Positions 1,534-63,864 of a stretch of DNA of 64,000 nt are shown here, piece by piece. A program made the position numbers and the translations under genes. Source of the DNA: Zygnema circumcarinatum SAG 698-1b (taxonomy: Eukaryota; Plantae; Zygnematophyceae). Within the stretch, counting starts at the first letter, position 1; every line of letters begins with the position of its first letter. Under the pieces are notes generated by a model that saw only the letters and a list, made by a program, of their open reading frames with translations, had not been told where the DNA came from and made no database searches. Location of the stretch: contig CM074806.1 in the NCBI GenBank assembly GCA_037447605.1, forward strand, positions 2,542,001 through 2,606,000, read 5' to 3'.

Positions 1534-3274
1534 ATGGCTGGCCCAGGAGGACGCATTCCTCCCCCACAGAACGGCACGTGGTATCCATTGCATTTGGGGA
1601 CAACCTTTTCTGGAGATAATTCGGCTCAGTATTACACACTGAGATGTATGCAGTTTCTTTCTCTTTGGCCTTTTTTATGTTGATCCCTCTTTGAAACTTG
1701 AAGGTGCCCTCATGTCATGCATTTAAATAAGCCATCAAGGCTCAGCAATGTGAGATGAGCACGATGTAGGCTTGCTTGGTTAAGGGGAGGGGTGAATGCT
1801 CATGCTCATGCTCATGCTTTGTGTGTGTGTGTGCGTTTCTGCCTTTTGCAGATGAGTTTAAACCTGCATCAGTGGATCCTTCAAAGCCCGGTGTGATGAG
1901 AAGTCGGAAGGATAAAAAGGAGGTGGCTGTGGAGCTGCCTAATAATCAGGCAGGGAAGCCAAACGTTGCATTTCAAGGACATAGGGAGCTTTGTCAGGAG
2001 CAGGAGGCCATTCTTATCTTTGACGGCCAGTTGCTGCGGCTTGAGAGGCTTCACCACTCAGTGAAGAGTCTGAAGGTAGTAAGGGGCAATGCAAAGGCTG
2101 CAGCTGAAGGGGCTACTGCTGCAATCACAGAGATGCAGTCTTCCCCCCTTGAAGCTGCAGGAGATGGTGGCCGGACTCCTGTTGCAACTCCTCCTCTGGT
2201 GGAGGATTTAAAGGTATCTATTATTGGCCATGCCTCCTCTCTCTCTCACTCTTTCTCTCTCCCTCTCTCACTCGCCCTGTCTCCCTCTCTCTGTCTATCT
2301 CTACCTACTGGATGAATGGAGTGGTAACCCTCAATGACGACGGTGGGGGCTTGATAATTAAGCTGGTTCTGGTTGCAGGTTCATGAGGATGAGGACTTGC
2401 TGCTCCCCGTGTCTGAGGCAGCTGGTATGAAGCCCTTTTCTAAGCTCATAACTGCTTTTGCTTTTCACAAGGCCGTTATTGTCAACACGATGGCCCCCCC
2501 TCATCCTCCCCTTACTTTTTCTTTTTTTGGGTCAAGCATCCTTGGCTTTTAAGCAAAACCGTTTCGACGCTATTTTTTGGTGAAGCTTTTATCTGTGTGC
2601 CTCTTTTTGACTGCAAATTATTCTTCCCAAGGAGAAGCGTTGTTCATTGTGGGATTACAAAGCCATGAAGCCATCTTTGCATGAAGTCATCTGGTTTCTG
2701 CCGTTCATACCCGTTCATACCCCCTAATTCTACATGTGAATCCTTACCCTCTTTGGCAAATTTGCTGTGTCTACTGACAGTCCGTGCAGAAGTAGCGAAA
2801 ACATCCCCTAACTTTAAAGCGCATTTGAGCAAAGCCAAATTGCCAGGGACCGTTAAAAAGCGGAAGACAGCAGCAGTAGAAGAGCCTCCTCCTTCTCCTC
2901 CCGCACCTCCTCCTCCTCCTCCGAAGGAACGAACTCTATCACCCCCGAAACCATCAGCATCTGACGAAGAAGCTCAACAATGCAAGAAGCCGAGGCCCGA
3001 AGATGTGGAGACTTTAGAAATGGGAGTAGAGGAGGAGGTGGTGGAGTATTATGAGACAGAAACGGATGAAGAGGAAACGCAGGAAGTTAAAAGCGGAGGA
3101 GGAGGGGGGGTAGCTGTAGAAACTGCTAAAACTGGTGCAGTGTTAAAAACTTCGAGTTCGAGTGGGAGCAGCGCGAGTGGCAGCAGCGCGAGTGGTAGTG
3201 GGAGTGACGGAAGTTCCAGTGCTAGTGGGAGTGAGGACGACTCTGCCAGCTCGGGCGACGACGTGGTCGAGTAA
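1534..3274 (+). CDS. EAF: ELL-associated factor (EAF family transcription elongation factor)
   Basis: Exon 1 (1534-1645, WYPLHLGTTFSG...YYTLR) plus exon 2 (1852-2213, YEFKPASVD...FQG...AILIFDGQLLRLERLHHSVKSLK) gives the EAF domain. A Pro-rich, acidic and Ser-rich tail ends at TAA 3272-3274. The acceptor of the last exon is uncertain. Confidence 0.9.
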
Positions 3275-3872
3275 TTGTTTGCTGAAAGTGATGTGGTACG
3301 ACTTGGGTGAAGTCGCATCCTCCGTGTACATACAGCAATGGCATTTGAAACCCATCGCGATAAGTTATACACCTTTTTTCAATCAATTTTCCTGGAAGTC
3401 GTGGCTTTTCAAGACCGAGTACCGCGGGACACAATTTTCTTGATTGGACCCAACTCAGTACACCGTCACACAATTGAATCTCTGTCAACCTTTCAAGCAG
3501 ATTATGCTCGATGAAGAAGACAGAGACTTAAAGCATATGGTCTCTACTGTAGTCCCTCAAGTATTTGTTTACTATTACTCCATATTACTACACGGACTTA
3601 TGATTTGAAACTCTAGGTCTTCCTAGAAATTTGGAATGAGAAATGGAGAAGAAGTATCTAAATCGCTTTAATGAAGGCGCAAGACACAATGTGCCTGCAA
3701 CTTTGCCGAATTAATATAGAAAAAATAATAAATTTGGCGCTGAATTGTATTAATGATACGTCCCGCAGCCCTTGCATATAACAAGACTTCCTTCGATTGC
3801 CTTGAAAGACGGTTTCTTTGCTCTATCTGCTTCAGACTGCCGGAAGTCTCATTGGACTATGAAAAAAAATGA

Positions 3873-6546
3873 TCAAGTCTTAAAGTCGCATGGCCTTCCA
3901 ATGGGAATATCTTGAAGAGCGCAGAAGCGTACAATTGCCGCACGCTGCCAGCTCTTGAAGCTCCTGCACGGAAATGCAAAACAATTACAAACGGCCATCC
4001 ATACAATATAGGAACTTCATGAACTTCGCGAACCGCAGGAACAAGAACTTCGTGATGGTACCAGAGACTGATTTTTTCTCACGAATCTCCAGAGCAAAAA
4101 TCACCTATTGAATAGGGTTTTGAAGCTCAAAAAAGGAGATGCAAATGGTGCTTCAAGAGATGATCGGATCGGGACTTACTTGGCGTCCAAGTGTACCATA
4201 ACTTTCCCGCCTGGAAATGCTCTGCGAGTCATCTCCACCGCCTTCAATACTACACCTTTCCAGGTCCCTCCCACTTCAAATGCATCCATGGCTGCTGCGT
4301 TCGTACCTCCCTTCACTCCCTTCTCTGCTGCCTTAACCAACGTCGACGGCTCCTCCATTGAAAGACTGTAACCAGAAATCAAATGCCCCATCCAGACTCC
4401 TTCATGCCTGCAGCAGCCATGCAGCCAGCCAGGAGCCCCACTTGTTAGCAAGTTACCGCCATCTCCTGTCCTCTGAGTGCACGCTCCGTGAGAAGAAAAC
4501 ATGAAGTGATTGTTAACCAGATGAAGATATAAAAAGAAGAATCGCCGGAAAGACATAGAGGAGGAGATGCTCGTTCGACTTACTTCCCGACATCTCCATG
4601 GCGTGGCGCATAATGACCACCTCCGATGCCAACCAGTACTGGAGTGCCTTGTGCTGCTTTCCTCCAGTCGCCTAATCCTTCTCCTCCGCCTAGTCCAAGC
4701 CCTCTCCAGAACACACTCGCCATGGCCATGGCAACGTCTTTCCTTCCCCAATACTCTTCCGTACTTCCTATTTCGCAGAACATAGCAGGAACTTCCACTA
4801 TAGGACCATGATGGGTTGCTTCCAAAGTTATCTGGAAATTGTGGTGATAAAACGGAGCATTTGAAACCATAAACCAATGAGAACAAAACATTGAATCTTG
4901 CCACAGTAGCTAGCCACACCTAGTTCCAAAATGTAGTAGACTGTCCTTAAAAGCAATGCGGTAATTCAAACCAAAAAATAGATCCCTCTCGTCGGCCCGT
5001 CAAGCCAGTCAGTCTGTTATGCAACTTTGGACAAACATAATCACGTCGTTCTCCACCCCCCTCCATTCGCCATTCTCTCCCCAACAACAGGAACAAGGGC
5101 CTTCGGTTAAAGAGCAGCATGGCTAAAGGAGGATTGTTGTGACGTGCCTCAAACTCCGGCAGAAGCCCCTGCTCTGATGCCACGTCCTTGAGCAGGCGGA
5201 ACCACGGCCCTAAGCGCACACAGGGAGGGCCCAGCCATCCTTCTGCTCGGGGAGGGGCGACCTCTCCGGGCTTCAAATGGGGAATGCCTGCGGAAGGTAA
5301 TCCCACTCGAGGAGTTAGGGACCGCAGAATCTCCAAAGGAAAAATCTCATACTTCCACATACCCTACTACCATTAATTTGAACTATTGAACGATTAAAGG
5401 TTTTGGCTGTTGTAGGGAAAAAAACTATTCGTAATCGGTGTTCAAAAGAAAAACTGTTTTAGGTTTTTGTTTTTTTTTTTTTTTTTTTTTTAACAACGGT
5501 CCTTGTTCGAATGCGAATCCAAATACGAAACCGAGTGAACATTGAACAATTAATTCTCGGTCATGTTCAATTTCAATTTACTTTGCATCCACCGATCAGC
5601 AATGAGATTTGGCGCGTTCAAATTTTGCCCATTTCCATTTCCGTACCCTATGGAAATTGTTGATCTGGCAATAAAAATTGTACGGCAAAAATTGGGCCGG
5701 GCTTCAGCAAATCTCACAGATTGCTTGAATTCTACGTGGCAAAAACTGGAATCCACACGTGTAACCGAACAGATTGAGACTTTCAACAATTGAACATTGT
5801 TTAAATTGTTCAATTTAAAAACCTATTGACCTCGGGTGTTCAAAATTTAAAATGAAACCTTTTCATTTGGACATTGAACAATCCCAAAAAAAAAAATCGA
5901 TTGTTCAAATTAATCGTGGCAGGGGTAACAAAGAAATCATAAATGTAAAATACATACATATGCACATGCGAATGTTGATTACACAAATAACAGAACTGCA
6001 TGCAAGCTTTTCAGGCCCTCTCTGATGGCGATGATGGCCCTTCCACGCACCGATAGGGTGCACTGTCAAAGCAGGCTTTCCAGAGCCTGCCACGTGGCGG
6101 CTCATGAAGATGATTTCGCGCACCTTCTCCCCTGTCGCCTGCTGCCACCGCGAGTCAAGATACGCTTCATGCGTCAGAAGGGCGTCGTTTCTCATCCATA
6201 AACGCACCGCCCCTTGCTTCCAGGCCGGATTGTCCTGCAGGCTTTAGGGGAGCCCATTGAAAAAACACAAAAGCCCACTCAAAATGTCAGTAAAGAAACC
6301 ATTGACATGCGGCTAAAACCGATCAATTGCCTAAGCTTCATAGGCATCACTTGAACATTGCTTCAGACAAACTCCAGGAAAGCGTTTGCAGAAAGATCTA
6401 CATACCTCGATACAGACCATGCTCGCCCAGTTTCCCATGGCCAGGAGAGCTTGCGCGGGGCCTAAGGATGCAGGGTCGGGTTTATTGGCGATAACCAAAG
6501 TTATGGCTTCGTCCTGGATCGCCGCGGCATCTGAGAATGCCGCCAT
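3873..6546 (-). CDS. GEK1: D-aminoacyl-tRNA deacylase (DTD2/GEK1 type)
   Basis: Exons encode ITLVIANKPDPAS, IIFMSRH...PALTVHPIG, RLGPWFRLLK, ITLEATHHGP...MFCEIGSTEEYW, GIGGGHYAPRH, WMGHLISGYSL and AFPGGKVMVHLDAK-SFKSWQR, collinear with plant GEK1. Confidence 0.95.
5369..5919. mobile_element. Putative non-autonomous TIR element (MITE) in a GEK1 intron
   Basis: Terminal inverted repeat ATTAATTTGAAC (5372-5383) / GTTCAAATTAAT (5903-5914). Several subterminal ATTGAACA / TGTTCAAT-like motifs occur in both orientations. AT-rich; no clear TSD. Confidence 0.5.
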
Positions 6547-51717: not shown

Positions 51718-53909
51718 CTACAAACTAAGGGTCACAGCTCGGGGTTTGACGGGAGAGTAGGGCATGCGCGCCAACTGAAGCCATTCGCCCTCCCCGTGAC
51801 GGTTGAACACCCACAACGGCTGCGGAAGTCTCCACATACCAAAGACCTCCCACGTTCCCATCTTCCTCTCCTGACTACCCATAATGTACAAACGGTCCTG
51901 TACAGTCACACAAGCAGGGCACAATTTAGGGACCCTTGGAACTGCATGAAGTGTGCTCCACGTCTCCCAGCAACCACTCGGAGAGGCTGTCTCAGATGGG
52001 CCCATTGCTTCCCCGGAATCTCCTTCAGACAGTGACCTCCCCTGTACAACCGCCCCACCACCTTTCTGGTTCAACTGATCAGTGCCCTCTGCTTCCATGA
52101 AGTAGTCGAGACTGAAGTGGCTCACGGGGGGATTGCGAGACAGCATCAGTTGTCCCATGAGGCTCCAAGATGGACGCAGCATACTCAGCCCAGCGAATTT
52201 TACCAGCTTTGATTCTAACACTGCTGTTCCAAATCCGCGACAGAAAGCTCCATGGGGACCAGGTCCAGCTACTCGCCATTTCTCCAACACCGTATTGTAT
52301 GCGAAGACAGAACCCCTCTCATCGAGGTATCCTCCAGTAGAGTCCAAACCAGCAAAGCCACGCCCGAGCACAATGAAGTCAGCACCCACAGCCTGACCTT
52401 GGCAAGACACTTCATCCGGAAAGAAAATGTTTCCCGGGAGATCTTGAATAGGACTCCATGCATTAGAAGAAGGATTGTAGACTTCCGCGGAAGTCAAAGC
52501 CCTTGGAAAATGATTGTCATCACTTTGAAGCTCCTTCAGAACAGGTGGAGGTTGGATTTCTGGCTTGGAAGGCAGGCCTCTGCCAAAGCGGTACGAAAAG
52601 CTGTCATACTGCCTTGGATTCTCCTTTGGCGAAGCTGGTTTTGCGTCAACCGCTTTCTCTCGTTCCTCACTACATTCTTCATCCCAGTCTTGCGAGGCTA
52701 ATTCCTCTGGAAAACATTGTAAAGAAGAAGAACGTGACTTGTCATCCAAATCTTTTTTTACACAGTCATCCCTGCTCGCGCCCTGAGTGGTTTGATGATT
52801 TGAATCTTCACACGGCTCATCTGGCTCATCAAGTGTCCTACACACCCCCCCCGCTACATAAATTTTGCCTGCAATGACTGCACATGCAAAACCTGCTCTT
52901 GCGTGCCCCATAGAGGCGACGCGTTGCCAGCTGTTTTGCAAAGGAGTGTAGACAAAAACCTCTGCCGATGCCTTCCATATGTACGAGTTAAGGTTCTCAT
53001 CAAACTGCCAGCAGCGACCACCCAGGAGATACACTCTTCCCCCGAGAGAGACGCAGGAGAAGGCTGAACGACGGCCAAGATGCACCCCATGGGAAGTCCT
53101 ACGAGTCGGAAGCTCCCGCCACCTGTCTGATGTAATGTCATAAAACGACATGCGTACTGCCGGTAAGTCAGAGTTTACGCGCTCTGCTATTGGAGGATCA
53201 GGATCTTCGGTCACCTATAGACACAAGGCAGAATAGGGTTCTATTCAGATACGGTTCTATACACATCCAAGGAATAGGCTGTCAACCAGCCACTCTTGAA
53301 GAAAACCATAAACGCATGACAAGAATAACCACGATGAGCTTAATCTGATCCATTCTACTACTAACAGTAGCCCCATGATGACTTGTGCTTCACAAAACAG
53401 CTAGCAACTGGCATACTGAAAGCATGACTTGCTTCAAGAGAGTCAACATAGTGAAAAAATGACAGCAGAAGAAGCTGATTAGTAGTCAATACCAAGCGAC
53501 GAGATCCCTTCCCTTTGCTCCTCCTAGGAAGCTCTTACGCAGCCAACATTTGTAGAACCCGAAACTAGTCATTTATTGCCACAGAAACAACAGGAAGCAA
53601 GGGAATTTGCTAAAAACCAGCCACACAAAACCTTTCCTTATGAGTAAACTAACTACTCTAGTGCGTGAAAATGATCCCCTGGTTACATAGTTGTATGGCA
53701 AAAGCTACGAGCTTTAAAGCTGTACATACCTGATCAAGGACCATAATGAAAGGAGCCCGTGCCGTTTCCATCTTCTCCCGCATCTTATAAAGCTGATTCC
53801 CACAGACAGTGTCACGCCATCGCCTTGACACCTGCTTGGCAACTATGAGGCTCTTGCGATCAAGCCCAGCCAAAGTGTACAAAAATAAATCTTCTGGCAG
53901 ATTGTCCAT
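51718..53909 (-). CDS. F-box/kelch-repeat protein
   Basis: Exon 1 is the F-box MDNLPEDLFLYTLAGLDRKSLIVAKQVSRRWRDTV. The long second exon carries kelch repeats (RVYLLGG...W, KIYVAGG, SAEVYNPSSNAW, FAYNTVLEKW, DRLYIMG...W). Confidence 0.9.
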
Positions 53910-58996: not shown

Positions 58997-60450
58997 TCCC
59001 TTGCCACGAAGGGATCTGTAAATATACTGCTCGAATTTGTACAGAGCTGCCAATTTTTAGGTCAAGCTCTATGTACAGTTGTTTGACTTTGCATCAGAAA
59101 GTCGTGTGCTGGGAAGTGTGTCAAGCAGTTTAAGACATCTGTTGGCACCGGCTGAGACAGTGTTGATGCGCAAAGGTTTCTGTTTACAAAATGCCCATTG
59201 GTGGAATTTCGTCTTGCAACTTCTTTTACATTAGGGGGAGACAGACCTTGACGATCGCTTACAGAATTCCCTCATTCCTTACACTCCCCCTATTGGTGTT
59301 TTATGTTAAATTTTCCCATGTGCACTGAAAAGTTTTGCATATGATTCATGGCATGTGACTGTAGAACTCATCTTTATACGAGGGTTTCGTATGTTTTAGC
59401 CGGGCTGACTTTGCCGAAATGAGTTACTTGTGCATCAACATGACGATCTGCTGATCCGCAAACCTTGCTCATAGGAGTGTCAGGACACTGGAAAAAAGGC
59501 AGTTGCAAGACAGTCCAAGCATCAACGAAGGCCCCACGTGTTGTTCTAAAAAGGAGCCACGTCCATTCGAATCATATGCAAGGGGCTGCCAAACAGGCTC
59601 ACAACAAACAATCCGTCTTGCTCTCATGTCGTCTCTCAAATGTACACTTGGGGTGGCTGGTGAGCAAGTTCCTACAATACCTGCAACCACTAAGCTACAC
59701 AGCATTCATACGGCATTAAGAAACCAGCCGTCACTCCAACACCAATCAAAAGAACGCTCCAACACAAGCAGTAGCCACCTGCACCGCTCATCTTCCCACC
59801 CACTCAGCCAACGCCGTACCGCCCAACCCTTCCCCTTTCTAAAGAGGCAGCCGAAGCAGGGTTTATTCACAAAAGCAGAACAGCTACCAAAAGAAGGCTT
59901 CAGACAACAGAGTGGCGAACAGAAGCATGGGCGGAGCACATGCGAAGCCTGCAAAACAGAACTTGTACATTACAAACGTGCATCTGCATTGAGACTGAAA
60001 GTGCGGCTAAGTTCCAAGCGATATTCCAACGCCCGCATGTGATGTCCGAGCAGCATGCACCTGCACCCAACCAGGGAGCAGCCAATGTTGGCACACTGCG
60101 CTTGGACGAAATGTAAAGCTACAAGAGGCTCAAAACAAAGTACAGTCCGGGACATACATTGGTCAATAAGCCACCCAGCAGACTCGACGTGATACTGCCT
60201 GGCTAGTCAGCCGGCTGGCCAGACAGGCAGCTGATACACAAAGTCCCTGAGGGGCACTATCACGGAATGACGTTGCATGGGAAGTTAGCAGCTTCCCAAC
60301 CGTTTTCAGTCAGCAGCCGGCACTGCATCTCCAGATGATGCTGGATAGCTGCCCGGGAACGAGGCCTTACCAGCAACGAAGGTGACCTATGGGCCTGGGG
60401 ATCTTGAGTCTTGCTCTTACAGCACCAAGCAGCGGTGACAACCATCAGCC

Positions 60451-62701
60451 ATGGCTAGCAGGAGCAGCCGTGCAGGACGATGGCTCCGTCTGGCAGGGAT
60501 GGCATGGCGTACAATGAAGCAGGAAACTGGCAGGGGGAACCTGTATGGAGTAAATGACGGAGAAACTCTGCAAATGGCAAAATGCTTTGCTCCTGATGCA
60601 GGGAGAACAATGTCGTCTGGAATTAAGTTACAAAATATGGATTATTGTTCTCGGACTGGCGTAAGGCTGCAAAGATGCACAAAAGAGAACTGGTGCACTG
60701 TGCTAGGGAGGCGAAATTTTCACTGTATGCATCATATTTTCGAATCCCACGGTGAAAAGGGAGCTAGTGCTTCAAATGTAGAAGCTAGCGCTGGCGGGAT
60801 GAGAAAGTATCTGGAGGATCTTCCTCGAAAAAGTTTCATGAATGCTTTGCTATTGCATGTGGGGTGTGTATCGACGCTTTGCTTCCCAGTTAGCTGCGAG
60901 GGAAGTGATTTCAATCATCAGAACAACTAAGGAGGGAACATGTAGCCATCCCGCAGATTTACAAAACTCAACTTAAGGGATGCTTGCGGTTGTTGTCATT
61001 GATGTACTGCTTAAAACCGTGTTGTCGTCCTTTTATAAGCAGGCCAGGTCGTTTAACGGCTATAATAGTCTGCCAATTTCCTCCATGCCCTTCTATCGGT
61101 TTGGCTTCTTTGTTTTTTTTTTTTTTTAATAAGGTCGACAATATTTCAAAGTCCAATTTTTTTGTTTTCCCCCGATCTGTGTGTACATATGTAGGAGATT
61201 TCCACGTTTCATTTTTGAAATTAGTGCTTGCATTTCAACTGGACGACTGTCCTATAACTCACTGGAGTCATTAGTTTTTTGCTGGAGTGGAGCTCCATAG
61301 CGCAAATTGTTTCTTATTGAGGCCCTCATGCAATGCTGAGAGCAAACATCGTGCTCTAAGACACCATCATCACTTGCAAACATGTATAGACTGACTTGCC
61401 CGTAACTTTCAGCCTTGATTTTGACGTTCACTTACAGAAAATATTTGACACATTCTTGAGATCAGTTTAGTTCTGTTTCCTTATCTCCTCGTCTCTTTCT
61501 TTTTCATTCTTTGTGTCTCTGTGGAAAATCCAGGCAGGATCCTCGGCTAGCTGGACAAAAGGCTTTCTTTGAGGAGGCAATTGAGAGCAAGTTCAAGGAG
61601 TGCATCACCCGTCATAAAGACCTGCTTGTAGACGACCGAGCCAATGCTCACCTCCAGGTAGTCCCGGTTAAAGTCTCCTCTCAAGTAGCACCCCATCTGA
61701 TGATCTACTAGCCAAGAAAAGGCAAGAAGCTCGAAGGATGAATCGTCTATGCTGGACTCAACCTTCGTACACGTACAGTTAAACAATGCTTTGTGCTTCA
61801 AGTCTAGACAACTTCGGGACTGTAAAAATTGGATGTGCATAAGGGGTCGACAAGGTGCTGTGCAGATGGCGGCAATGGTTGCTGCATCCTATTCTGTGCT
61901 ACTGCCATGGATGGCAAACGATTCAGCAGCGGTCATAGAGGTCGTTAAGCAACCAGCTGGTGCTGCAGCTGCTGTTTTTGTGAAGGTTGTTCAGAAAGTG
62001 GCTATTCTACTCGCATGGGATAAGATGAAATATGCGTCTAATTTGCTGCGGAAGACAGAGGCCGATTATGGAAAGGCGTTTGAATTCGAGCATCATGTCA
62101 TTCCAGAGTGAGAGTTTCTCACTTGCATATGGCTTTTGCAACCATTGGCCATAATGAGCTTATGTGCGTTTAAGTGCTTTTGTAAAAGTGATGCGCATTG
62201 CCGCATGCATTTCATCATGCATGTTGACATCGGACAGTGTTTTGCAAAGGTTGCTAATAGTGTACATACCGTTTCTGCTGTGATCATGCACAAATTAGAG
62301 ACATGATCAAATGACTCACCTTGTTGTGCACGTGGCAGGAGCCATGAAATGCGTGTGAGCCGCTGCTTGTATCATACGGTGTTTGAGAAGGAGGGCGTCC
62401 CAGAGTTAACCTCAATCTTTTGCGCATTGGACCGTATGTGGTAAGTGTTCGACCAATCTTATTTACTTTTTGTTCCTTCAAACTGCTTGCTTTCCTTCTC
62501 CTTCAGCAATCTCAGCACAAAGAGCTGCCAACAAAGAGAAATGTTTGAACGTTGTTCAGAACCGTTTTTTTTGTTTGCTTCGCTCTTTTCCACAGGTTCA
62601 GTCAAATCAATCCTAAGCAGCATGGTGTTGAATTTGAGCGTCCAGCCACTCTTGCAGACGGAGCAGCTGCCTGCAGATTCATTGTCAGAAAGGTGAGGTG
62701 A
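60451..62701 (+). CDS. Organelle-targeted L-2-amino-thiazoline-4-carboxylic acid hydrolase-like protein (PF14196-type)
   Basis: Five phase-compatible GT-AG exons (60451-60863, 61534-61657, 61866-62107, 62339-62440, 62596-62701). They give an Arg/Ser-rich presequence, then DLLVDDRANAHLQ-MAAMVAASYSVL, YGKAFEFE, RVSRCLYHTVFEKEGVPELTSIFCALDRM-WFSQINPKQHGVEFERPATLADGAAACRF. An extra terminal exon (EMTT*, near 62835) is possible. Confidence 0.8.
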
Positions 62702-63815
62702 AGAAGCCCGCATAGGTGTTGGTGGGAGACCAATTGAGCTCGGTAAGTTTTGGCGATGTTACTTGAGCCCATGTACGGGATTAGGTCCATGCCGGTGCCA
62801 ACGCATATCAAAGTCCATGCCCACACTCTGCAGGAAATGACCACGTAGCTGTCGAAATAAAGGACAAATTTACGATGTGAAGACCCGACTTTTGGTAGAA
62901 ATTGGGCGTCATCGTTAGCAGATTTTGCAGATTACAGTTTTGAAAATCTGCGAACAGCTGTCAACCGCCGGGGGGGCGTCAGTCTGCCCTACAGCAGTGA
63001 AATGTGAAGTCGATTCATTGAACCAGGGAAGCGTCTTAGGTTGGGCATGCAGCTTTCAAAGGCATGTGTTCATTGTATCATTAATGCTGCCTCTAAGGCC
63101 TGGCTCTTTCACTCTTTGCAACATTTTTATTCCAATCATGTTTTCAATAGTGAGATAAAGCCGCTGCCTTGTATCTCGATTGCCTGCTGTGAAGAAAGTA
63201 CGCCTACTTGAAGCAGACATAAGAGCCGGTTTCCTCAAACTAAGAACCGTGGATGAACTTGTGATTTGGCATCCACTTTTGGCCGTGTCTGCTACCTTCA
63301 GCGCATCGACTGATGCATCCGATGCAAAAATCTAACGGCTCAGAGCTGACCACCTCAAGCAGCGGTCATTGCGCGATTTACAGACCGGAAAAGTTGGAAG
63401 ATCAACCAGTGGGTGCAGACACGATTCTATGCAAAAAATGCTGCTCGGACGTATGCCTCTCGTTGGGATCTCCACCCGCAAGTTGCTGTGGCGTGTGCCG
63501 CAGGAGGTGGGAGAGAGCAGGAGAGGCGGTGGGTGAGACAGGAGTGGGAGAGTGGGAAAAGGAATTGAAGGCGAGGGAGAGGGAGAGAGGGCGAGGGAGA
63601 GGGAGAGAGGGCGAGGGAGAGGGAGGGCGGGAGAGAGCGGGCAAACGTGGTTGGCGGCGTTGCCCAGGAATGAAATTTAATTCCATACGTACGTACGTAC
63701 GGCACAGGCGTGCAGGATATGGGCCGTACGCATGCAGCCGCCCGGGTCGTACGGATTGGCCGACCAAGGCTGGACCTCCACGCGGAGGGCGCGGGTGAAC
63801 TGACCCTAACGCCAA

Positions 63816-63864
63816 AAACCCTAAACCCCCAAACACTCCAAAACCCTAAAGCACTAAAACCCTA
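63816..63864. promoter_or_regulatory. Cluster of three telo-boxes (AAACCCTA), probable promoter or 5' region of a gene outside the window
   Basis: AAACCCTA at 63816, 63841 and 63857, downstream of a GA-rich tract (63540-63650). Confidence 0.55.

Follow-up and report, generated by a model that had tools for sequence, protein, structure and literature searches.

The gene described here lies at 60451-62701 on the forward strand of a 64,000-nucleotide stretch of the genome of the streptophyte alga Zygnema circumcarinatum SAG 698-1b (CM074806.1, 2,542,001-2,606,000); this 64-kb stretch is called the window, and all positions below are window coordinates unless a relative is named. Judged from its sequence, the locus is a real and intact five-exon nuclear gene, and the explanation we consider probable overall is that it encodes an old green-lineage protein of the ATC_hydrolase family (Pfam PF14196), made up of a basic extension of about 118 residues and a domain of about 210 residues. 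The gene is an additional member of a family that is already known and unstudied, and that is old in the green lineage, with representatives in a picoalga, Trebouxia, streptophyte algae, a moss, a liverwort and ferns. By analogy we take the protein to be a small-molecule hydrolase or binder with a putative Cys3-Asp metal site, a hydrolase being somewhat the more likely of the two.

Gene structure and junctions

The model was built from a reading of positions 60000-63200 of the forward strand together with the list of open reading frames (ORFs). Splicing of the five exons gives 987 nt coding for 328 amino acids with zero internal stops; all four introns (670, 208, 231 and 155 nt) have GT..AG borders, and the exon-end phases of 2/0/2/2 are compatible. 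An earlier reading made from the letters alone, here called the sequence-only reading, had proposed five phase-compatible exons and a protein of about 330 residues, which these 328 codons without a stop bear out. The N-terminus MASRSSRAGRWLRLAGMAWR that it quoted was found in the exon 1 product, and its three Cys motifs were all found in place, with the Cys codons at 62364-62366 (RCLYH), 62421-62423 (IFCALD) and 62672-62674 (AAACRF).

Exon 1 (60451..60863, 413 nt) begins at an ATG at 60451, has an in-frame stop five codons ahead of it, codes for residues 1-137 and two bases of codon 138, and ends in phase 2 at the donor GG/gtgtgtat. It holds two parts, namely the N-terminal extension (60451..60804, residues 1-118), which has a basic tip, is poorly conserved and is a candidate organelle-targeting sequence, and the first conserved segment of the domain, YLEDLPRKSFMNALLLHV (60808..60861), which corresponds to the first helix of the fold. 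The region of this segment (60781-60861) matches positions 2804-2884 of the relative L001 in tblastx with 56% identity, and the segment aligns with FEGLPRRAFLNSL of Calypogeia and AGLPRKAFINSL of Physcomitrium, which are the N-termini of the land-plant proteins. A shorter exon 1 (60451-60542), giving a product of 221 residues, was considered and ruled out because the tblastx match shows 60781-60861 to be conserved coding sequence.

Intron 1 (60864..61533, 670 nt, GT..AG) has no homologue match within it. It is followed by exon 2 (61534..61657, 124 nt), which codes for the helical N-terminal part and ends in a conserved D..R..HLQ, and which was matched in tblastn by nine of the 12 query homologues with E-values down to 1e-7. 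After intron 2 (61658..61865, 208 nt) comes exon 3 (61866..62107, 242 nt), coding for the central helices (SYSVLLPW ... ADYGKAFEF), and then intron 3 (62108..62338, 231 nt, GT..AG), over whose junction the orthologous proteins are gap-free. Exon 4 (62339..62440, 102 nt) codes for the strand-helix-helix core with Cys269, the PEL motif, Cys288 and Asp291, and is separated by intron 4 (62441..62595, 155 nt, GTAAGT..CAG) from exon 5 (62596..62701, 106 nt), which codes for the last two strands with Cys320 and ends with the stop TGA at 62699-62701. All of these features are on the forward strand.

All four junctions are supported by comparison rather than by RNA from the Zygnema genome. Across junction 1/2 the metagenomic relative L003 has one uninterrupted frame with identical spacing (its positions 2703-3269), and across junction 2/3 L001 has one uninterrupted frame (its positions 3194-3553). 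Junctions 3/4 and 4/5 are of equal length and gap-free against the annotated Physcomitrium protein and against the fern protein P0004, whose locus (L002) sits on a transcript-sized run-assembly contig of 1.27 kb. Homologous proteins match exons 2-5, and nothing else in the window is matched convincingly. Exon-wise Nei-Gojobori counts against L001 gave a proportion of non-synonymous differences (pN) of 0.29 and of synonymous differences (pS) of 0.86, the latter saturated, and from this comparison purifying selection is deduced.

The presence of introns varies among these close relatives: intron 2 of the window is absent from L001 and intron 1 from L003, and the introns of L003 at the remaining positions are far longer, at 1.7 and 2.3 kb. 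L003 also carries, at its positions 4700-4798, a partial second copy of the start of exon 3 (33 residues, 48% identical to exon 3 of the window), about 200 nt upstream of its full exon 3 (4995-5219), which could be a duplicated, alternative or decayed exon.

Family, fold and conserved residues

Searches with the window sequence were made exon by exon, and the joined model of 328 residues was used for frame, length and composition. The gathering cut-off of Pfam PF14196 is 28.1 bits. Exon 4 alone passes it with 31.1 bits over profile positions 87-116 of 145, exon 5 gives a weaker match of 16.6 bits over positions 121-143, and exons 1-3 gave no Pfam match when scored singly. Nine full-length or near full-length homologues scored 43-61 bits against the same model, two of them spanning positions 3-144 and 7-144, and collinear bacterial proteins (from Embleya, Robiginitomaculum and a Clostridium plasmid) scored 64-95 bits. 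The nearest large Atlas clusters consist of bacterial PF14196 proteins of about 220 residues. Membership of PF14196, which the sequence-only reading had put forward, is therefore upheld by the score of exon 4 against the cut-off and by those of the orthologues, and the Pfam check, run in this exon-wise manner, did return the family. Its further statement that the family is largely prokaryotic and that its eukaryotic members are uncharacterised agrees with the Atlas clusters, the scan of bacterial genomes and the literature; no study of eukaryotic PF14196 proteins was found in the literature searched.

NCBIfam had no family model for any member, and searches of the PDB by sequence profile returned chance-level matches only. 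HNOB (PF07700) was not matched at E-values up to 0.1 in the nine homologues or at E-values up to 10 in the window exons, V4R (PF02830) was not matched in the window exons, the homologues or the bacterial members, and among the homologues and bacterial members there was no Pfam match to iron-sulphur (Fe-S) families or to DUF4033/D27.

The fold was tested on an orthologue, P0048 of Calypogeia fissa, which was modelled with AlphaFold2 from a 26-row alignment. The model has a mean predicted local distance difference test (pLDDT) of 88.5 and a predicted template modelling score (pTM) of 0.82, and consists of five long helices followed by a strand-strand-helix-helix-strand-strand arrangement. The best natural matches to it in Foldseek were H-NOX (E 4e-4, probability 1.0), Bet3/TRAPP subunits and PoxR. 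In VIA-align the model was superposed on H-NOX with Z 6.1-6.6 over 151-159 residues at a root-mean-square deviation (rmsd) of about 5.8 A, on Bet3 with Z of about 6, and on MopR, PoxR and DmpR with Z 5.3-5.5, these being whole-domain matches of 144-159 residues at an rmsd of 5-6 A. H-NOX, V4R and Bet3 form one recognised fold group, and ATC hydrolase is reported to resemble HNOB and V4R at the profile level (PMC5847659). The model supports, at modest Z, a predicted domain fold of the H-NOX/V4R/Bet3 type, in which a helical half packs on a small beta sheet. The V4R/H-NOX-like fold that had been claimed for the window protein thus holds up at the level of the fold in the P0048 model, without a Pfam match to HNOB or V4R.

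When three bacterial and six eukaryotic PF14196 proteins are aligned (A4), three Cys and one Asp are among the invariant columns, as is the P.L of the PEL motif. The counterparts in the window protein are Cys269 (62364-66), Cys288 (62421-23), Asp291 (62430-32) and Cys320 (62672-74), and the Cys...PEL...Cys-x2-Asp...Cys core of the bacterial members is also present in the window protein. The candidate ligands are spaced approximately as C-x18-C-x2-D-x28-C. The phenol sensor DmpR binds zinc through Cys151, Glu172, Cys177 and Cys185, right beside its phenol pocket (PMC7264223), and V4R and ATC hydrolase have been described as having a three-Cys cluster in common (PMC5847659). The ligand set in DmpR is the same, three Cys and one carboxylate, but its order is C..E..C..C against C..C..D..C here, and the spacing differs.

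A zinc site beside a small-molecule pocket is preferred because this ligand set matches that of the V4R zinc site. In the proposed arrangement Cys269, Cys288, Asp291 and Cys320 would hold one Zn2+ beside an enclosed small-molecule pocket, as in the V4R phenol sensors; the analogy leaves this placement of Zn2+ evenly balanced in our estimation. The sequence-only reading had suggested either a Cys-liganded metal site or an Fe-S protein analogous to D27. The former is plausible, given that three Cys and an Asp are invariant from bacteria to plants and that V4R holds its zinc by three Cys and a Glu; the latter is weighed with the other alternatives below.

At the second invariant Cys, five members (P0026, P0044, P0050, P0052 and P0030) have three to four Cys in a row (QCCCCS.D or ATCCS.D). 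In alignment A3 the carriers of this run are chlorophyte, picoalgal and protist, and the streptophytes and bacteria have a single Cys at this position (IFCALD, MCAFD).

Distribution and descent

A HMMER search of 1.84 billion representatives with exon 3 returned nine clusters only, the best with 58% identity (E 2.7e-21), and the members of these clusters trace to metagenomes, to run assemblies and to MMETSP transcriptomes of protists. One cluster consists of intron-poor Tara Oceans scaffolds on which the gene adjoins a response-regulator-Myb gene, and whose source we infer to be a marine picoprasinophyte. Word searches added Physcomitrium patens, Calypogeia fissa, Ceratopteris richardii, Adiantum nelumboides and three Trebouxia strains; a word search with exon 3 in a stop-free stretch found nothing. 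No seed-plant protein appeared in any search run, whether the HMMER search with exon 3 or the word searches.

Bacterial genomes were scanned by pattern. With a profile made from eukaryotic members only, 15 pattern matches were obtained and none was confirmed. With a four-sequence alignment, 47 loci were found, a sample biased by the patterns used, which are mostly from Actinomycetota, the rest including Robiginitomaculum, Rhodothermus, a gammaproteobacterium and Chloroflexota.

In the maximum-likelihood trees, where the window is represented by exon 3 alone or left out, the eukaryotic sequences form one group, with support of 89/58 when the long Clostridium branch is included and 100/98 without it. 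Within this group a streptophyte clade (96/91) places exon 3 of the window with its sister L001 (98/90), followed by L003, the moss, the liverworts and the ferns. The other eukaryotic branch holds the chlorophyte and picoalgal sequences with two protist sequences, and a third protist sequence (MMETSP a) branches first. Which bacterial branch is nearest to the eukaryotic group is left unsettled by the tree.

The streptophyte part of the tree matches the species tree, which argues for vertical descent from before the split of chlorophytes and streptophytes and not for recent transfer. Horizontal gene transfer into this lineage, which had been suggested from the sequence, is accordingly not borne out; since the eukaryotes form one group and the streptophytes follow the species tree, any bacterial origin predates the chlorophyte-streptophyte split. 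Since the family is common in bacteria, an ancient bacterial source is likely, and vertical descent appears to have been followed later by loss in seed plants. In the searches made the family is rare, and no characterised plant orthologue was found. A loss linked to the flagellum, motile cells being common to algae, bryophytes and ferns, was considered and dropped because the source is a conjugating alga, and conjugating algae lack flagella.

Targeting, function and comparison with known systems

The first 25 residues of the window protein contain six Arg and Lys against one Asp or Glu, and when the exon 1 product was modelled by itself in AlphaFold2 (pLDDT 36), a helix at residues 7-26 was almost the only structure predicted. 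The eukaryotic N-termini are all net positive, with a charge of +2 to +5 over the first 25 residues, and the stretch before the domain is 40-110 residues longer in the algal and protist members than in those of land plants or bacteria. L001 and L003 have open extensions of about 90-125 codons, similar in length but not in sequence to that of the window, which speaks for translation of the extension. The fern transcript has an in-frame stop three codons ahead of its ATG, and the land-plant proteins are for this reason considered to be truly without an extension. In the algae the extension would direct the protein into an organelle; to judge from the sequences this is an even prospect, the organelle being undecided.

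The extension of the window protein also contains a twin Cx9C pattern, C66-x9-C76-x5-C82-x9-C92 (60646-60726 on the forward strand, residues 66-92), which arises in 0.33% of shuffles and in one of 152 long open stretches of the window. Twin Cx9C typifies the CHCH proteins, which enter the intermembrane space of mitochondria, and in an improbable reading the pattern might also route the algal protein there. The extension scored 15 bits against Pfam NDUF_B7, below the cut-off. A CHCH domain in the extension was rejected, as neither L001 nor L003 has the pattern and AlphaFold2 gave no helical hairpin (pLDDT 36).

As to function, the protein would act on a small metabolite, more probably by hydrolysing a C=N or C-S heterocycle than by binding alone. 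PF14196 has one studied member, the hydrolase AtcB of Pseudomonas, which acts on L-2-aminothiazoline-4-carboxylate (L-ATC) and opens a sulphur-containing ring, and a small-metabolite hydrolase of this kind is a tentative reading by analogy with it. Activity on L-ATC itself is possible and has no specific support. A more specific version, which we consider improbable, is an organelle-directed, Zn- or Cys-dependent hydrolase that opens the ring of a thiazoline-type or related heterocycle and was apparently lost in seed plants; its substrate may be the cyanide-cystine adduct ATC or a by-product of cofactor or tetrapyrrole metabolism. If an organellar ring-opening hydrolase of this sort were true, it would represent a salvage or detoxification step missing from plant pathway maps.

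Several points weigh against the reading of the gene as an organelle-directed family member with a zinc site and a hydrolytic function. The Pfam evidence for the window protein consists of single-exon scores, to which exons 1-3 contribute none, and comparison is the sole footing of the junctions. The fold matches, with Z below 8 and an rmsd near 5.8 A, are in the range that the tool itself says may reflect a common arrangement, and a VIA-align search of 48,000 representative chains, made independently of Foldseek, was uninformative, with mainly helical proteins (dynein and the Rb pocket among them) at its top. Convergence of the four invariant residues on one site is putative, and the Pseudomonas enzyme reportedly has no need for added divalent cation, which fits either a tightly bound structural zinc or no metal. 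The sequence of the extension is not conserved, Met117 is a possible alternative start, and the land-plant orthologues are without an extension, from which it follows that targeting is not a fixed trait of the family. Bacterial gene neighbourhoods are heterogeneous and give no clue to function: the ten neighbours of six diverse bacterial loci belong to unrelated families, which include MarR and TetR regulators, a formamidase, a reductase of the old-yellow-enzyme type, a MobA-like transferase and a molybdopterin oxidoreductase, and the commonest neighbour family is found at only seven of 37 actinomycete loci.

The alternatives differ in how much of this reading they replace. That the locus is not a working gene, being a decaying pseudogene, a set of chance ORFs, bacterial contamination or a recent transfer, is extremely improbable: the model is without transcript support from the Zygnema genome, and no identical product is on record for the window's own ORF products (the lookup was made by ORF and not with the spliced protein), but its stop-free frame extends over all five exons with canonical splice sites, non-synonymous change is about one third of synonymous change against a relative, its spliceosomal introns are at positions common to relatives, the sequence nests within the eukaryotic, streptophyte clade, and the extension too is open in three independent relatives. 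An Fe-S cluster held by the three Cys and the Asp in place of zinc, as a component of redox or radical chemistry in analogy with D27, would draw on the same four invariant potential ligands, and chlorophyte and protist members have extra Cys in the CCCC run beside the second Cys. The nearest structural analogues with this ligand set bind zinc, however, the Fe-S and DUF4033/D27 families of Pfam were not matched, and we know of no cluster motif with the spacing found here, all of which leaves a cluster highly improbable.

Two further alternatives concern the function of a protein otherwise as described. The sequence-only reading had an organellar L-ATC hydrolase, which would open 2-aminothiazoline-4-carboxylate to N-carbamoyl-cysteine in cysteine salvage or in the clearance of cyanide adducts. 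The protein passes the Pfam model named for that enzyme, is full-length and collinear with bacterial members of about 25 kDa, keeps the putative catalytic or metal residues intact, and the algal N-termini resemble presequences. The premise is a substrate formed from cyanide and cystine or protein thiols, though, and nothing found points to cyanide. Identity to the bacterial members, among which AtcB is not included, is only 21-27%, the bacterial homologues lie in unrelated neighbourhoods, no paper was found that ties the family to cyanide in any eukaryote, and no N-carbamoyl-cysteine amidohydrolase partner was seen in the 64-kb window, where none was looked for. Seed plants release cyanide in ethylene synthesis and are the plants with the largest internal source of it, and a cyanide role is not favoured because the gene was not found in these main producers; on balance we regard the organellar L-ATC hydrolase as clearly unlikely. 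A non-catalytic binder, sensor or carrier of a small molecule, such as a tetrapyrrole or lipid in an organelle of a photosynthetic cell, is rather unlikely. The proteins matched by fold are binding proteins, the ligands of the group being haem in H-NOX, phenols in the V4R sensors, a chlorophyll precursor in BchJ and palmitate in Bet3, and all carriers of the gene identified to organism are photosynthetic, while the marine scaffold appears to be of the green lineage. In cyanobacteria the clusters for tolyporphin, a tetrapyrrole, include an ATC-hydrolase-like gene, tolI (PMC8401325), and related domains serve in archaeal signalling proteins (PMC5847659). Against a binder, no member had a Pfam match to HNOB or V4R at E-values up to 0.1, the sole studied member of PF14196 is an enzyme, and no partner or output domain is fused to any eukaryotic member.

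Elsewhere in the window, an uninterrupted ORF of 498 codons lies about 7 kb upstream of the gene on the opposite strand (51718-53214, reverse), and no other ORF in the last 14 kb comes near it in length. About 600 nt past the stop of the gene, at 63313-63836, overlapping ORFs of 144-161 codons occur on both strands; their products are of low complexity, rich in Gly, Arg and Glu on one strand and in Pro, Ser and Leu on the other, and the region is probably a simple repeat and not a gene.

The proposed family member is of interest as part of a small, well-conserved family, old in the green lineage, with intact residues of a probable active or metal site and no studied eukaryotic member found. 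Its function is directly testable because an orthologue exists in Physcomitrium patens, a moss whose genes are routinely targeted; the questions to start from are what became different in seed plants and to which part of the cell the protein is sent.

Among plants and algae the relatives are Physcomitrium patens P0057, Calypogeia fissa P0048, Ceratopteris richardii KP509_12G027700 (P0047), Adiantum nelumboides L7F22_058824 (P0046) and Trebouxia spp. P0051, P0054 and P0055, all of them collinear over the whole domain and with the same invariant Cys/Cys/Asp/Cys set. In tblastn the liverwort protein P0049 was 74% identical to exon 4, 66% to exon 5 and 38% to exon 3, and the other streptophytes were slightly lower. 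The window protein differs from those of land plants in its extra extension of about 118 residues, with a twin Cx9C of its own. The assignment to PF14196 is already automatic for the fern and moss proteins, and the Zygnema gene overturns nothing known.

AtcB, the founding member of the family, falls under the same Pfam model; its subunit is of about 25 kDa, the same single-domain size as the window protein minus its extension. Stand-alone PF14196 proteins of bacteria, namely of Embleya, Nonomuraea and other Actinomycetota, Robiginitomaculum, Rhodothermus, Chloroflexota and, as a plasmid gene annotated as ATC hydrolase, Clostridium estertheticum, are full-length and collinear, including the helical N-terminal half, and at 21-27% identity have identical invariant residues. 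They differ in having no introns and in forming branches separate from the eukaryotic group, and the N-terminus of Embleya, the one actinomycete compared, is acidic and not basic. The V4R domains of DmpR, MopR and PoxR and the H-NOX/Bet3 group have the same overall fold by model comparison, but the algal protein has no AAA+ or DNA-binding output domain attached.

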